The notes below the pieces were generated by a model. It worked only from the letters and a program-made list of their open reading frames with translations, was not told where the DNA came from and did no database searches. Of a DNA stretch of 64,000 nt, positions 24,856 to 33,800 are shown piece by piece. The stretch spans positions 124,001-188,000 of the forward strand of contig JALMLS010000231.1 of the NCBI GenBank assembly GCA_038496445.1, in the 5' to 3' direction. Every line of letters begins with the position of its first letter. Within the stretch, counting starts at the first letter, position 1. The position numbers and the translations under genes were made by a program. The DNA comes from Trichosphaerium sp. ATCC 40318 (Eukaryota; Protista; Tubulinea).

Positions 24856-27800
24856 ATGTCGCTCAGCTTACGTGCTACTACTGAGTACAGGAAGTTGTCG
24901 TTTAATGAATCACACGACGTACTTGTTTCCGCCGACATTGTCGCCTCTGCAGTGTCTGATGGTAATGAACGTGCCAAAGCAGCTATTGTAGCAGTAATAG
25001 ATAGGTCAGGATCCATGTCTGGAGTACGATCTTAAGCATTCTAGTACTATAGTTAACAACCTTTTAGGATCTTGACTTGGTGAAACAAAGTTTGAAATTC
25101 ATTATCGACAGCATGAAGGTTGGCGATTTTTTCGGAATTGTCACATTTGGAGACACCACTAGAACAGTTTTAAGATTGACTTGTATGGGCAACAAAGGTA
25201 TGTTTTGAAGGTTAATATTCAAGAGGTTTTTTTTGTTGACTTTGATAGGAAAAATCCAGGCAAGACAAGCTGTAGAACGAATTCGCATATCTGGATGTAC
25301 AAACTTATCTGGAGGATTATTTGACGGATTGAAGCTACTACAAGAATCAAGGAATGCATCAATACCTAAGAACCAAACAGTTCTTTTGTTCACTGACGGA
25401 GGTATGATGAACACAAATTGAGAGTAGCAATTGACTTTTTTTTTTTTTCTGTAGAAGCCAACTTGGGTATAACAAGTCTTCCTAAACTCCTAAAGGAAAC
25501 AAAAAAATATGTTTCTATAAATAACATGAATCCTTCCATTTTCACTTTTGGCTACTCTGACGGGCACAATGCTTCATTCTTGCGTGGTATTTGTGATGCA
25601 CATAGTGTACTTATCTTTTTCTAATATTCTTGACTTTTTGGTTTGACTCTTTACTCCGTAGGGCATGTACTACTACATCAAAGATAAAATGATATTAAAG
25701 CTAGCTTTGCTGATTGTATTGGAGGTTTGCTTAACGTTGTTGCTACAGACGTAGTTTTAGAGATTGAAGCAAAAACAGGCAACATTTTGTTTTGGCAGCG
25801 TTGTTTTCTCATAAGTGCTTTAGATGTCACCATCAAGGAAGTGCTTACAAAATACCCTACTGAAAAAATACGTGCAGGTAAATTCTATCAGCACCGTGTT
25901 ACAATTGGCGATATATATAGTGAAGAAGAGAAGAACATACCTGTACGTGTTTGACCACTTCAAGTTTTTCATTTTTCCTTTTTTTTTCCTTGGTCCTTAC
26001 TTATGTTTGTAGGTTCAACTCGTCATTAAAGCGCTATCTAATCCTGGTGAGCAAACAATAGTATCGTTCCTTGTAAGATATACAAACACAGCAACCAAGA
26101 TTACAGAGTTTGAGAAGAACAAAATCGGTCTATGTCGGGTTGAAGAACATCAAGTTGACAAAGAAGCTACTCCTGCTACACTTGATATGGACATGCAAAG
26201 AAACAGAATACTTGTTGCAAAGGCTCTTGAAAACGCTGCCTATTTTGGTAAACAAAGGAACCTAAACAAAGCTAAAATTACGTTGACTGAATGCTTGGAT
26301 AAAATCGAAGTTTCGGCCTCTTCTCAATGCAATTTTTCTCAGAGTTTGATTCGCGATTTGAAGCAAGCTATAGCGAATATGGTAACTTCCTCTTGATTTC
26401 ATTTTTTGCTATTTATTTTTCGAAACTAACACGTGATTTGTTGTTAGTCTTCTCAATCTCAGTTTGAGCATGTTGGTTCAAAGTATATGTACAGTTTATC
26501 AAGAACATTGTACACGCAACGCTCTTCTGGTATTTCAAGGTACAATCGAATACCCGTTTAATTCTTCTGTTTGCACGTGTTTAACTTTCTACTAGTGCTG
26601 CTGCGATGTCGTTCGTTACAAATAGTAAACGTGATATGATTAACAAAGCAAGAGCAGGATCTGGAATCACACTTCAACATAAAGCCAAAGCGTACGTCTT
26701 TATTTACATACAACAACTAATAAAGTACTAGTTCTGGTGGACCAAAACCTGTATCCAGTAAGAAAACACAACATTCTACACCTGCATACGGTGTCAAAAC
26801 AACTACCTCAACGCCTAATAAGAAGACATCTACAAAGCAACAAGCAGCTGTACTAAATCCAAACAAGAACGCCCCTCGATTTGCTGCTTCTATTTCGCCT
26901 CTAGCTGGTCCTGTATCTAATGGGTTTGCATCATCTGTCAGAATCGGAAGAGCTGTTAGACGTTTAATGATGGACTTTAAAGAAACGAAGCAACTCAACA
27001 TCAACAACGTACACCAAAAACTCTTTCTCATTTTCTCATTCTATTCTTACTTGTTCTCGTTTTAACTTCTATTTTTTGTTCAGGTTGTTGCTCAACCTCT
27101 AGAGTCAGATATCTTCGAATGGCACTGTAATCTGAAAGGTCCAGAAGGATCTCCGTACGCTGATGTTGTTTTCCATTTGATTCTGCAGTTTCCAAACACA
27201 TACCCTTTCAATGCTCCATCTGTGTACTTTTGCAGTTACATCAGTCATCCGCATGTCTTTGGAAGGTACGCAAAAAATGAACAAATAGCTATTCATTCGC
27301 TTAACTGTTCTACTTAAGTTGGGTTTGCCTTGATCTTCTACAAGAAGCTCAGTGGGGATCTTCTATCGAGATGGATAAACCTTATACTGGTTGGTCTTCT
27401 GCTTATTCTGTATCGAGCATTCTATTACAATTACAGTCGTTTCTGTTCGATGAAGCTGGAAAATCCGAAAAGGTACACATGATATTTTGTTTTATTTGTT
27501 CGCACAACAGCGCCTAACATGTATGTTAAGGAAGTTGAAAAAGCTGCTTTGAGTGCTAAGAGATTCAAGTGCGGAACGTGCAGTCATTGTACAGGAAAAT
27601 CTTGGCCAGAGTTTGTCAAGACAAAGCGTGTTGTCAGATACAAGAAGAAGCAACTTACAATACCTGAAACCAGAAAACCGAAAGTTGTTGAAGGATACAA
27701 TGAACCTTCTTCACAACAATTGATTCCAAGCGTTCAATCTAGTCAAGAAACACAAACGAGAATCAATTGGGAACGTGTTATTTCCTCTATGAAACGTACA

Positions 27801-30032
27801 AACGGACAGATTCGTGGAACAAACTATCAACCAAGAAATAGCTATCAACGACCGTCACCTAATAGGCCACCTCCTCGATACCAAGCTCAACCAACACCTA
27901 CACCTAAACCTGTTGCTAAAAAACCACAAGCTACTAAAGCAAGCATCGAGATTGCAGGACGCTATACAAGTTCTAAGGCAAGCAACTTTTACAGTGTTCT
28001 TGTTATGGAAGAAAAGTCAAAACCTTCAAGAAGAAGAAACCCACGACCTCAGAGAAATCCTCCACAGAGCGCTACAAGACATTCCTTTCCGAAGAAATAT
28101 ACTCAAAGTCAACAACCACAACGTAGAGCAAGTTCGACATCTCAACAACCTAAACAAAACTACAACATTAAGATTGTTCCTCAAGCCGAAAGATACCAGC
28201 CACACCACAGATGGAGGTTCCAAGCATCAGCCGAGACTAGCTACTATGAAAGGGATCTAGTACATAATTCACGACCATCAGGTAAACTCACTCTGGGAGA
28301 TTTTATTGTCAAAGGACGCTCGTCTAAGAAGAAAACTGGAAACAAGAGAAGAGGAAAGTGGAGAGAAGTCGTTTTGGCTACACCTGAACCTGAAGTAAAA
28401 AAAGTCGTATTATCTCCTTCTATTCTGTTACCATCAACTTTGGAAACAAAGCTACAAGAGGTGCGTTGATTACATTGTTTGTAAATCACGTACTGACTTT
28501 TTTGTTGTAGGAATTTTCTTTGATTGTTAAAGATACTTCTTCTTGTTTTGGAGGGATAGACTCAAGTCTTTTTGCCTATGTACCAGACGAGATCATCATG
28601 CACGTTTTTGGATTTTTACTTCCAGAAGAATTAAACGATCTCTCTTCCGTTTGCAAGGAGTTTGTACGACTCTCAGGAGACAAAAGGTAAATACTAGACA
28701 CGTTGTTGAACTTTCATTTCTTCTAATGTTCAAAGTGCCTTTCTAACGTTATATCTAGGCTATGGCGATCACTCTTCCGTCAAAGATACTCCGCATATGG
28801 TATTTACAACCAATATACTATCCAAGACTGGAAAACAGTGTTCGCACAGGTAATTATTCTGTCTGAATATTGCTTTTTTCTTTTCAACTCTGACCGCCTC
28901 CCTAGGAAATAGCTATTGGTAAAGGTGGTCTACTATGTTACCATAGTCGCGTATCATTCCGCGACGACATTCTTGGGATACCTATTCAAATCTCTAGAAC
29001 CGGAAAGTTCGATTCTTTATCATCAACAGTTGAGTTTTTGAGCCTTGAAAGTTTCAGTGAAGATGGTGTTAGAAAGACAGTCTGGGGTGAGAAGTTTACC
29101 CACTGGCTTCCTCTATGGATTAACAATGAACACGGAAATCGAGCTGTGCCATATATTGAGCAAGCTATCGCTGATCTATACACAAACCGAAGCGGCGCTA
29201 GAACATCTTTCAACGCAGATATGGTACTCAAGATAATTCCGAGATTAATGAATACTATGGTTGTCAGCGTAATGAAGGGTGACGAACATGCCTCTATCAA
29301 GGCTCTAGAAGGTAATAAAAGCAGTCAAATCATCAACCACTTAAGCTGTAGCTAATGACATCTTACAGGTTACTGCGCTTTGCACAGACTTCTTATTATG
29401 TTCATCAAACGTTATCCTGCTCTTCAGGGCAAGGTTAACCTCATAACAAGAAGGTTTGCTAGACAAGCAGACGCAAGAATAAAGAGTAAGACACCTAACC
29501 TTGGAGAATTCCTTCCTCTTGTTGCTGTCTCACAACACGTTGATTGGCAAGATGTCTGTTGGCCTTACCTAACGGAAACCTTCGACCGTAACGTACTGTG
29601 GGCATCTAAAAAGTACCCTACTCTCGCAAAAGTACCAAAACACACGTCTATTGCAGATCCAACAAGAAACAGACTTACCTTGGATGCTACTTTAGTTAGC
29701 ATGCGCTTACTTTGCTTCCACGTGTATTTCTTTAAGCATATTGCAAAGCCAGGAGGTATTTCCTTGTATATATGAACCTTTCTGTGTCTTACTCTCTACT
29801 AGGTATAACGCAAGATGAAATAGCTGCTTCGTATGATAAGTTCTATGGTTTACCAAGTACTCAAATGAAAGAAGCACTTCAGAAACACGTGTTTAAGATT
29901 TTGAAGATTTCGACGTGGAATGACGTATTTAATGCTATAGAAGTACCTCCTCCTTCTCCTGTACATCTCACAAGATGGCTTGTACAAGCGGTTAAAAACT
30001 CAGAGAGAAAGAGATACCATGGAAGGTTCTAA
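24856..30032 (+). CDS. VWA - UBC(E2) - low-complexity linker - F-box - conserved C-terminal domain fusion protein
   Basis: MIDAS VIDRSGSMSG, GCTNLSGGL, VLLFTDGEAN. E2: RRLMMDFKE...DIFEWHCNLKGPEGSPY...FPNTYPFNAP...HPHVFGSWVCLDLL...WSSAYSVSSILLQLQSFL. F-box: YVPDEIIMHVFGFL...VCKEF...KRLW. Exons splice in frame. Confidence 0.85.
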
Positions 30033-30820: not shown

Positions 30821-33800
30821 ATGAACCTACACCTGTATATCTTCATAGGGTTATTATTTCTACGCGTTCATGCTAGCCAGCAGAATGCTCAACAGACTAA
30901 AACTATAACGCTTGTTGGGTCTTTAGACTTGAGGCCATTAACCACCACTTCTGATCTTTCTGCACGCTTTGAAAACGCTATTTACAAAAGCTTCAAGTTC
31001 TTTGAGCATTGGTTTAATAACATCAGAAAAACTCATGGAATGACAAAATATGTTGTTCAGGTCAACTTTACAAGCACAGGGGACAATGTTACTGCTAAAA
31101 TTAACGCACGTGATAAGTTTTAATTGCGCTAAAAAAAAAGGTTCCGAAAAATAGTTCCCTGACTATGGTCGTATGTAAATCTTGAAGCGCTAAGCTTCTT
31201 TATAGGATTACAAATACTGGTGTAAGCAGATACAGAACAACGAAGCAGTATTCCTTTTTGGCGGATTTGAGTCATGGCTTGTTAATATATCACGTGAGAT
31301 AGATGAATACAAAGAGTGCTTCAGGGTAAGCAAAAGCAACAGAAAATAATTCTTCTAGTTTGTGTGTTAATTTTATTGTGTTTCGCGTAGATTGATACAG
31401 CCGCTGCGGATGAGAGTACTTGGAGAGACTTTAAAAATGTTCTACCAATGAGAGCCTCGTTAAAACAGTAAGCACATTTATTTTAACTGCAGAAACTGCG
31501 AAAAAATAACTACAGAAAAGTGTTCCACGTGTGACGTGGAGGTAGTTGTTCTTACTTATTTTTTTCACTAACTTTTCTTTAAATAGCTATTTCGAGAGCA
31601 CGTACCCTTACTTGAGATTACATAAAGTCAAGAGAGTAATCGTTATTCGCCAACTACGACCAAACTTGGTGCCTTATGAGGAGGTACGAAACCTAAAAAA
31701 ACCCCAAAAATACTAACTTTCGTGGTGTCAGAACTTACTTGAAGGTCTGGATCTCAACGTTCGTATACAGCCAGAGGAAACATTCTATGTTATGGATACA
31801 AATGTTACAATATTACAATTGCCATTGGAAGAAATGGTCGAGCAAAATGTAACTGCGACCATAACAGAAGCAGCGAAAGTAAGTTCAATGTGTTTTTTAT
31901 GTTATTTTTATGTACCTTTTAAGAAATACCCCGATATCGATTGTGTGTACGTGCTCATATGGGAAAGAGTAAACCAAAAAGTTGTAGCTGTGATGGATGA
32001 TCTAGACTGGTAAGTAAACTTTCTTAGTGCCGATAAAATTAGTTTGACTTTTTTTTCACAGGGCGCCAAAAATGGTTATACACGTTCAGTCAGGTCGGTT
32101 CTTGCGTAGGCCTTCAGGTAAACGTTTTTACTCAATATGGTTTACTTATTCCTATCCCTAAAGGCAACATGCACTCTGGCATAAATGAACGGTCAGCGCG
32201 TACAGCTTTTAAAAGCGATGAGTTCACAGGTGGTAATTATACTACCTTTCTGACTCAACTGGCGGACTATTACAATACAACAACAAGTGCAGTTAATACA
32301 CTGTTTTATTTGAACCCATTTATGGCTGGATCGCTACTGCTCCGAACAATAGAAGTGAGTTTTTTTATACAGAGCAATTCTTAAGTTAGTTAGTAATGCT
32401 ATTTTAGGAACTTGATTCATTAAATCACAAGGATATCAGAGATAAATTATTTCGAAGCAAACACCCGTACGAACTATGAAAACACGTATTGCCATTGTTA
32501 TATTAACTTTAAAAAAAATCACGTGGCACATTTTAGGAAAATAACAACTTTTGATTGCAAAACTGAGTTTCTGAGCCTCTTTGTTTTAGAACTTTCAACG
32601 GTGATTATTCATGGGATATCACTCACGGACAAAAATGGAGACCTTACTTTCTACAAGTTCAAAATCGTGATGGGAATTATGACGGTGAAGAATACCTTGA
32701 GATCCTTGGTCCTATAGAAGGTAGAGATTTTTTGTATTCTTCTACAAAGTGTGCTAATGTGTTGGTGATAGCGTCAACAGGAAAGATGGTATATCCTATG
32801 ATACCTTTTAAAGACCGCTCAGCTAATCTCTCGTGGAATAAAAATCCCTTTGGAGAGATAGTGATTACTGTGATAGCTTGTCTGGTTATGCTACTTTGGG
32901 TCATATTCACAGTATACGTCATTTACAACGAGAAGGTACTTTCTTGGTTTTTTAAGTCACGTGCCAATTTTTTTGGATTGTTGTTTGTTAAATGTTGTTT
33001 GTTCACTGCAACCAGTCGAAACTACTTTTCTATTTCACCTTTGATGAACGCAAGACCGAGAGTCTGACGTCTTTTTTAGAGAGCGTCGAGGCAATTTCCT
33101 TGTTTCCATGTATTAGTTTCGCTTGGTGCTATCATAATCCTGTATGTAGTTTTTTACTTTACCTTAGAACAATGTTTAACATTGTTTTAAAAGGTTTACA
33201 ACTATTTTTTGGGCACCCTCCATAGAAGTATCATCAATGTGTCATCTATCTCTATACCACTTCCATATTGGATTCACACTTTTGTTTGGGTACAAACCGG
33301 TAAATCTGTACTACCTTTCGTTCACACTATTATAGAACGTTCTTGTCGAAAGCTTTATTGATAGTCATTGGTCACAAGGACCAAGAAAATAAAGTCAGAG
33401 TGCGGTACGGAAAAATAAAACAGTGCCGAACATACATTCAAGCGAATATTTATCTTCTAAGTTAAATGTCGTTTACTCAATTCATACTGATGTAGGCTTG
33501 ATTTTTGTTTATTCAAAGAATTTTAGCTTAGTGGTTCACACATCCATTGCAACCACTAATTTTTTGTTTTAGACCATTGTCCGTTGCTGTTGTTGTTCTC
33601 GGACTTGTTGTGATAGATATTGTCATTCTGGTTTTATACTCGATAATATACAACCCAGTGGTAGTTAGAGTCTCACCAGATGAGTTTGACATGTCCAAGT
33701 CATACATCATCTGCGATGGAAACGAAACAGCGGAAACAGTATTCGAGATTGTATTTGCAACAGAAAAGGTACTCGTTCACTGGCTTCTGTAAAAATTGTT

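Follow-up and report, generated by a model that had tools for sequence, protein, structure and literature searches.

Positions 24,856 to 30,032 on the forward strand of the 64,000-nucleotide stretch analysed here (the window; contig JALMLS010000231.1 of Trichosphaerium sp. ATCC 40318) hold one gene of 17 exons. Its predicted product carries a VWA domain with a metal-ion-dependent adhesion site (MIDAS), a Vwaint-like extension, a linker, a ubiquitin-conjugating enzyme (E2) domain, a CxxCxH motif, a basic linker, an F-box and a C-terminal domain resembling the ubiquitin ligase (E3) module of UBR4/Ubr1. As a rule, E2 and E3 activities reside in different proteins. We propose that this product is most likely a single-chain E2-E3 enzyme, a reading to which we assign a probability of roughly 0.55. 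The features of the locus are as follows:

24856..30032, + strand: whole gene, 17 exons and 16 introns, conceptual product of ~1,424 residues
24856-25023, 25068-25197, 25249-25401, 25455-25606, 25662-25942, 26013-26381, 26448-26539, 26596-26691, + strand: exons 1-8
26732-27008, 27084-27265, 27319-27472, 27531-28460, 28511-28686, 28759-28849, 28906-29311, 29369-29755, 29803-30032, + strand: exons 9-17
24856..25942, + strand: VWA domain (exons 1-5), from Pfam VWA/VWA_2 on exon pieces
25686..25689, + strand: A4 run with a one-base reading-frame slip inside the VWA domain
26013..26539, + strand: Vwaint-like extension of the VWA domain (exons 6-7), terminus YMYSLSRTLYTQRSSGIS, from tblastn to residues 322-436 of the Pyxidicula protein P0151
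26596..27008, + strand: junction exon 8 (AAAMSFVTNSKRDM...) and exon 9, a S/T/K-rich linker into UBC helix 1 (RLMMDFKE), joining the VWA part to the E2
26940..27472, + strand: UBC/E2 domain (end of exon 9, exons 10 and 11), from UQ_con
27570..27587, + strand: CGTCSH motif after the UBC fold, part of the conserved CxxCxH-x(3-8)-[WFY]P
27588..28460, + strand: basic, probably disordered linker, S/K/P/R/Q-rich, from composition
28511..28849, + strand: F-box (exons 13-14), VPDEIIMHVFGFLLPEELNDLSSVCKEFVRLSGDKRLW
28906..30029, + strand: C-terminal domain with predicted UBR4 hemiRING-UZI fold (exons 15-17)

The gene model was built from reading frames and splice candidates. It starts at 24856 and stops at 30030-30032, in agreement with the limits given by a first-pass annotation of this DNA. 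That annotation had described the domains as all in frame, which is contradicted by the model: the stop-free stretches of 24856-30032 are spread over three frames of the + strand, they are joined across 16 GT..AG introns (40-75 nt) whose donors are GTA-rich, and one VWA exon contains a one-base frame break. A base composition of 36-40% GC, together with the brief GT..AG interruptions of the reading frames, indicates an intron-rich eukaryote. Splicing was followed in Logan contigs from three public runs of a relative, mostly at 95-99% identity to the window with a few contigs at 90-95%; these contigs are called RNA-like from their splicing, an RNA source being on record for none of the three runs. 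Six of the predicted introns (25024-25067, 25198-25248, 26382-26447, 27473-27530, 28850-28905 and 29756-29802) are skipped exactly in the RNA-like contigs, which reach 28 nt 5' of the ATG and 33 nt beyond the stop into the untranslated ends and leave 25470-26245 and 26481-26735 uncovered. Between the window and the contigs of the relative there are 20 synonymous and 13 non-synonymous differences, and in exon 9 all of the differences (3/3) are synonymous. No paralogue of the gene was found within the 64,000-nt window. Searches were run with single exons or natural relatives as queries, the colinear relatives serving as proxies for the joined 17-exon protein, and the residue numbers of the window product assume one extra base at 25686-25689.

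Two relatives found by a HMMER search with the C-terminal exon, P0001 and P0151 (1273 residues), are open reading frames (ORFs) of Trinity transcripts from the testate amoeba Pyxidicula operculata. Both contain VWA, UQ_con and F-box-like matches, by Pfam in P0001 and by local HMMs in P0151. Alignment by tblastn showed that P0151 is colinear with window positions 24862-30023, its residues 436/437 bridging the predicted intron 26540-26595, and that P0001 and P0017 are likewise colinear with the locus. P0017, from another eukaryote, contains VWA, UQ_con and F-box in one uninterrupted ORF of 3,765 nt (1254 residues), which lies on a 1-Mb eukaryotic contig (ENA ERZ26167977, 6001-9765) with PI3K, symplekin and Rad21 as neighbours. 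The spliced junction peptide QRSSGIS-S-AAAMSFVTNSKRDM is kept residue by residue in P0151, P0017 and P0002. The Pyxidicula transcript ORFs, the single ORF of P0017 and the conserved junction peptide together place the VWA, E2, F-box and C-terminal domains on one polypeptide, which upholds the earlier claim of VWA, E2 and F-box on a single chain. On ERZ26167977, the VWA-E2-F-box-C-domain gene is intronless and its three neighbours are called in pieces.

The C-terminal domain comprises ~370 residues, consistent with the long domain noted in the first pass. No Pfam family matched this domain in the window, nor in six relatives even at E up to 10. A word-index protein search with the C-terminal exon was blank, probably owing to the length window of the search, and an ESM Atlas feature search was likewise blank. 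Residues 795-1225 of P0001 were modelled with AlphaFold2 from an alignment of 36 relatives and the window exon pieces, to which P0001 is 48-58% identical, giving a mean predicted local distance difference test (pLDDT) score of 90.8 and a predicted template modelling score (pTM) of 0.87. The sole significant Foldseek matches of this model are to the UBR4 E3 module, 8b5w (E 1.4e-05) and 8btl. In UBR4, the module pairs a one-zinc hemiRING, which docks UBE2A, with an 11-helix UZI bundle; this bundle was reported to have no counterpart in solved structures and, within the AlphaFold database, to be confined to models of human UBR1-3 (PMC10873205). The modelled domain shows the same two subdomains, a RING-like beta/alpha part and an 11-helix UZI bundle. 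As modelled, the fold of the C-terminal domain is that of the UBR4 hemiRING-UZI E3 module, and the Foldseek result speaks against the substrate-selecting role suggested for this domain by the first-pass annotation.

Conservation in the C-terminal domain was followed across the same relatives. The only conserved Cys and His residues are C82 (36/36), H84 (29/36) and H147 (36/36), and CxxC and HxxC pairs are absent. All three residues are present in the window, in CYHS and NNEH, with the family-invariant Cys at 28936 and the invariant His at 29131; in product numbering the residues of the C-terminal module are Cys1095 and His1160. Neither the Cys of CFH nor His364 varies among the relatives (36/36). 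Both structural alignments begin five positions ahead of the invariant Cys, which places this Cys on UBR4 Cys4838, as mapped by alignment offset and not by residue-level alignment.

The E2 domain matches UQ_con (PF00179) above cut-off on 27066-27314 (E 3.3e-16, 59.6 bits), and the second half of the domain matches on 27305-27514. The HPH motif is located at 27246-27254 (residues 628-630) and the catalytic Cys at 27326-27328, in VCLDLL, with the active site running across an intron (HPHVFG|S|WVCLDLL). Both elements had been recognised in the first pass, as had the CGTCSH motif that follows the E2. The catalytic Cys is invariant in 36/36 aligned relatives. By sequence, the closest solved E2s are UBE2D/Ubc4 (E ~1e-19); by structure, Rad6/UBE2A chains rank first among several E2s with nearly equal scores. 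An insertion of ~11 residues, visible as gap columns in the alignment with solved E2s, immediately follows the active site, at the position of the acidic loop in Cdc34/UBE2G-type E2s. Of 78 relatives, 45 have the pattern CxxCxH-x(3-8)-[WFY]P, at a distance of 55-116 residues (mostly ~60-70) C-terminal to the catalytic Cys, and the equivalent region has a pLDDT of 84-91 in the model of the relative P0006. In addition, contigs of two runs match the window only up to 27380-27411 and then continue into unlike sequence (255 and 93 letters). The 93-letter continuation resembles a shortened AYSV..LLQLQS stretch from the UBC domain, which suggests a paralogue or divergent allele of the E2 in the relative.

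The VWA/VWA_2 match lies on 25068-25418. The window exon pieces score 18.1 and 16.8 bits, below cut-off because the domain is split over exons; the colinear relatives P0001 (E 2e-15, 57.8 bits) and P0017 (E 2.5e-18, 67.4 bits) both match VWA. The MIDAS is complete in the exon translations, as claimed earlier, with DRSGS (DxSxS) at 25000-25014, the T in GCTNLSGG and the D in LLFTDG. The match to Vwaint is weak in P0017, and the intron 26382-26447 in the Vwaint-like part is among those spliced in the RNA-like contigs. A sub-threshold Pfam match to RSLD_CPSF6 was also observed on the Vwaint-like exon 26013-26393 (E 1.9e-05; 25.3 bits, cut-off 27), and P0001 has a weak match to the same family; it probably reflects a shared helical motif.

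The basic linker between E2 and F-box, also noted in the first pass, is formed by exon 12 as a stretch of 310 residues rich in S, K, P, R and Q. The non-synonymous differences to the relative and an in-frame 9-nt insertion are concentrated in this probably disordered stretch; the insertion (AAAAACCAG) is found in the contig of the relative at 27918, and a cluster of substitutions at 28065-28091. The linker evolves fast with its frame kept. In relatives, the linker that leads to the F-box may be as short as 1 residue or as long as 784. Since its length varies in this way, any contact between E2 and C-terminal domain must need a specific interface and not a fixed spacing. The 3' end of exon 12 is ambiguous (28395-28510): the donors at 28395 (GTAAAAAA) and 28461 (GTGCGTTG) are both in frame with the F-box exon, and one RNA-like contig stops at 28397, near the alternative donor 28395. 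The F-box itself is clear, as had been stated before, with matches on 28511-28687 to F-box-like (PF12937; E 4.3e-07, 30 bits, cut-off 24.3) and to F-box (PF00646; 20.6 bits, cut-off 20.5).

The HMMER search with the C-terminal exon yielded 791 relatives at E up to 0.001. A census of 153 retrieved proteins with local profiles of the four domains gave 46 with UBC only, 31 with UBC-F-box, 12 with UBC-F-box-TerD, 10 with F-box-TerD and five with VWA-UBC-F-box, the remainder being mostly fragments. The sources include Amoebozoa (Pyxidicula, Arcella intermedia, Mastigamoeba balamuthi and Protostelium nocturnum), the heterolobosean Naegleria gruberi, the chytrids Entophlyctis and Rhizophlyctis rosea, and the Ascomycota Orbilia and Arthrobotrys. 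Compact members are P0006 from Mastigamoeba and XP_002679196 from Naegleria. The ESM Atlas contains clusters with the C-domain fold under an Ascomycota label (UQ_con 98%, TerD 82%, F-box 69%), and further ones under the labels Rotifera (UQ_con only, no F-box) and Ciliophora. Based on the census and the Atlas clusters, E2 and the UBR-type module form the constant pairing and core of the family, and the F-box, VWA-Vwaint, TerD and CCCH parts are optional. Many relatives have E2 and C-terminal domain without an F-box, which does not agree with the earlier view of the F-box and the Skp1-Cul1-F-box (SCF) ligase as the core logic of the protein. The VWA version carried by the window is rare in the family and a local peculiarity; in sister subfamilies a C-terminal TerD is found where the window's subfamily has the N-terminal VWA. 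By sequence comparison, the same VWA-E2-F-box-C-domain design appears in at least two other eukaryotes. Among single members, P0012 has a CCCH zinc finger at its C-terminus, and P0012, P0121 and P0064 include very long forms of 2331 and 1828 residues, one of them annotated with a YgcG-like membrane part.

All family entries are annotated as hypothetical or 'UBC core domain-containing'. In the literature, including surveys of ubiquitin-system architectures, we found no family with an E2-F-box, E2-hemiRING or VWA-E2 fusion, most subscription papers being beyond reach. The architecture is not unique to this genome, with members in other eukaryotes, and a published characterisation of it was not found. 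As far as found, the gene belongs to a widespread and apparently undescribed family that puts known modules into a new combination. No pointer to giant viruses or to host-virus conflict turned up, with no dedicated viral search behind this.

Taking these results together, we propose how the protein might work. The ubiquitin-activating enzyme (E1) would load ubiquitin onto Cys637, and the C-terminal module would dock and prime the E2 of its own or a partner chain, in the way the UBR4 module acts on UBE2A, making the core a single-chain E2-E3 enzyme. The F-box would bind Skp1 and may plug the enzyme into Cul1-Rbx1, and the MIDAS face of the VWA domain may bind a substrate or regulator, possibly in a metal-dependent manner. 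Hints that the C-terminal domain could bind the E2 come from its constant pairing with UBC and from the full-length model of P0006 (pTM 0.84), which suggests that E2, F-box and C-terminal domain adopt a defined packing. The first-pass proposal of a self-contained ubiquitination module is strengthened by these results for a different reason than the one given, namely a C-terminal domain with the predicted fold of an E2-docking UBR4 E3 module. A wider proposal, which we put forward tentatively and at less than even odds, is that E2 and a zinc-poor UBR-type hemiRING-UZI define an ancient, eukaryote-wide class of single-chain E2-E3 ligases in which the E3 module primes its own E2. In this class, the F-box would dock onto Skp1-Cul1-Rbx1 as a two-ligase assembly, and VWA(MIDAS) or TerD would make targeting calcium- or metal-dependent.

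Several observations weigh against an intact gene for a single-chain E2-E3 enzyme, and some of them concern the gene itself. No RNA-like contig runs across 26481-26735 in this organism. Because the stretch is unbridged, the single-transcript claim rests on the relatives and the conserved junction. If the intron 26540-26595 were retained, there would be a stop (TAA) at 26559 and an ATG at 26606, and the locus could be read as two adjacent genes, one for the VWA part and one for E2 and F-box. However, the spliced junction peptide is conserved in three relatives, in which the candidate start Met aligns with E, C or A, and on these grounds the two-gene reading was rejected. Moreover, the intergenic gap would be just ~45 nt, and both parts are found in a single uninterrupted ORF in one relative and in a single transcript ORF in another, making two genes very improbable. 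The frame break at 25686-25689 is present in the sequence at a site outside RNA-like contig coverage, within the uncovered 25470-26245. In the VWA exon 25662-25942, frame 1 (GMYYYIKDK) and frame 0 (NDIKASFADCIGGLL, NDIKASFADC) meet with a one-base overlap, the relatives are continuous across the site (GMYYYIPDTTMVKQSFADC / GMYYYIPDTTMVKQSFADCLGGLL), and the exons add up to 4,274 nt, a length that would be divisible by three with one more base. Were the break real, this copy would be a decaying pseudogene from which no full-length protein is made. We regard this as improbable: the 4.3 kb of coding sequence and the 16 introns show no defect apart from this break, the break lies inside a homopolymer, spliced RNA-like contigs are present on both of its flanks, and the differences to the relative in the domain exons are mostly synonymous. 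With the rest of the gene free of defects, the break in the A4 run most likely stems from an assembly error at the homopolymer.

The other objections concern the domains. The HPN triad is replaced by HPH in the window and in the Pyxidicula orthologue. The HPN asparagine of E2s is regarded as important for isopeptide formation, and the exchange of this Asn for His at residues 628-630 would fit a non-catalytic or weakened E2 domain that serves as a ubiquitin-binding module. Such a loss of function is improbable, as the catalytic Cys is kept throughout the aligned relatives and the Pyxidicula orthologue shares HPH, which is also the form in 11 of 35 motif-bearing relatives (HPN in the other 24); HPH looks like a tolerated variant and not like decay. 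As to the C-terminal domain, a profile of F-box and C-domain searched against PDB sequences returned F-boxes only and no UBR protein, so that on the model the likeness to UBR4 is structural only, without detectable sequence homology. In addition, the C2HC zinc ligands of UBR4 (Cys4838, Cys4841, His4887 and Cys4890) are not kept as a set. The first-pass annotation had a conventional F-box receptor that brings its own E2 to the SCF, with Rbx1 serving the E2 and the C-terminal or VWA domain picking substrates. Its canonical F-box directly before the C-terminal domain, as in ordinary F-box proteins, its UBE2D-like E2 core with a normal RING-binding loop and its long flexible linker, which could span the SCF, are all consistent with this reading. 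However, the predicted fold of the C-terminal domain is that of an E2-docking E3 module and not of a known substrate-binding domain, and since many relatives keep E2 and C-terminal domain without an F-box, the SCF cannot be the core logic. We consider a conventional receptor unlikely, and favour the single-chain E2-E3 enzyme.

Some features of the predicted enzyme are shared with known systems. Like UBE2O and BIRC6, it has an E2 inside a large multidomain chain with targeting parts, one chain carrying and directing ubiquitin. To our knowledge, UBE2O and BIRC6 contain neither a recognisable RING-like E3 module nor an F-box, and their E2s belong to other subfamilies, whereas that of the window is UBE2D/Rad6-like. 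With the F-box proteins of SCF ligases (Skp2, Fbw7, FBXO3 and FBXO31) it shares a canonical F-box motif, with which the predicted fold agrees. In those proteins the F-box is accompanied by WD40, LRR or other substrate-binding domains but by no E2, whereas here it is an optional insert between E2 and E3-type module. The plant E3 ligases WAV3, WAVH and SOR1 (PMC11047095, PMC5924906) likewise place a cytoplasmic VWA-Vwaint on a ubiquitin-ligase chain. They rely on a RING finger and on an E2 recruited as a separate protein, and their domain order is RING, VWA, Vwaint. In the amoebozoan Dictyostelium, an intracellular VWA protein works with an F-box protein as Vwa1-FbxwD (PMC10539598); these are two separate proteins, Vwa1 being of the VIT-VWA type, without an E2 or UBR-type module. 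The C-terminal domain resembles in fold the UBR4 module (8b5w, 8btl; PMC10873205) and the RING/cap-helical module of yeast Ubr1 (7mex). It differs from both in the lack of detectable sequence similarity and in the other three C2HC ligands, which are not conserved here. There is also no UBR box and no giant scaffold, and the module stands after an F-box in the same chain as the E2.

In this family a canonical E2 is tied to the type of module with which UBR4 and Ubr1 dock Rad6-type E2s, and an F-box often stands between the two. According to its 2024 description, the UZI fold has no relatives outside UBR1-4 (PMC10873205). Its predicted occurrence in small, tractable proteins of amoebae, fungi and Naegleria would offer a simple system for studying how the module activates E2s, and would mean that the module predates the N-degron ligases and is in broader use than they are. 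The idea of an SCF into which a ligase brings its own E2 would also be open to direct tests, and the presence of VWA and TerD hints that ubiquitination could be under metal- or calcium-linked control.

Downstream of the gene, the next ORF on the + strand (30821-31123) has a hydrophobic, signal-peptide-like start (MNLHLYIFIGLLFLRVHA) and is probably exon 1 of a gene for a secreted protein.

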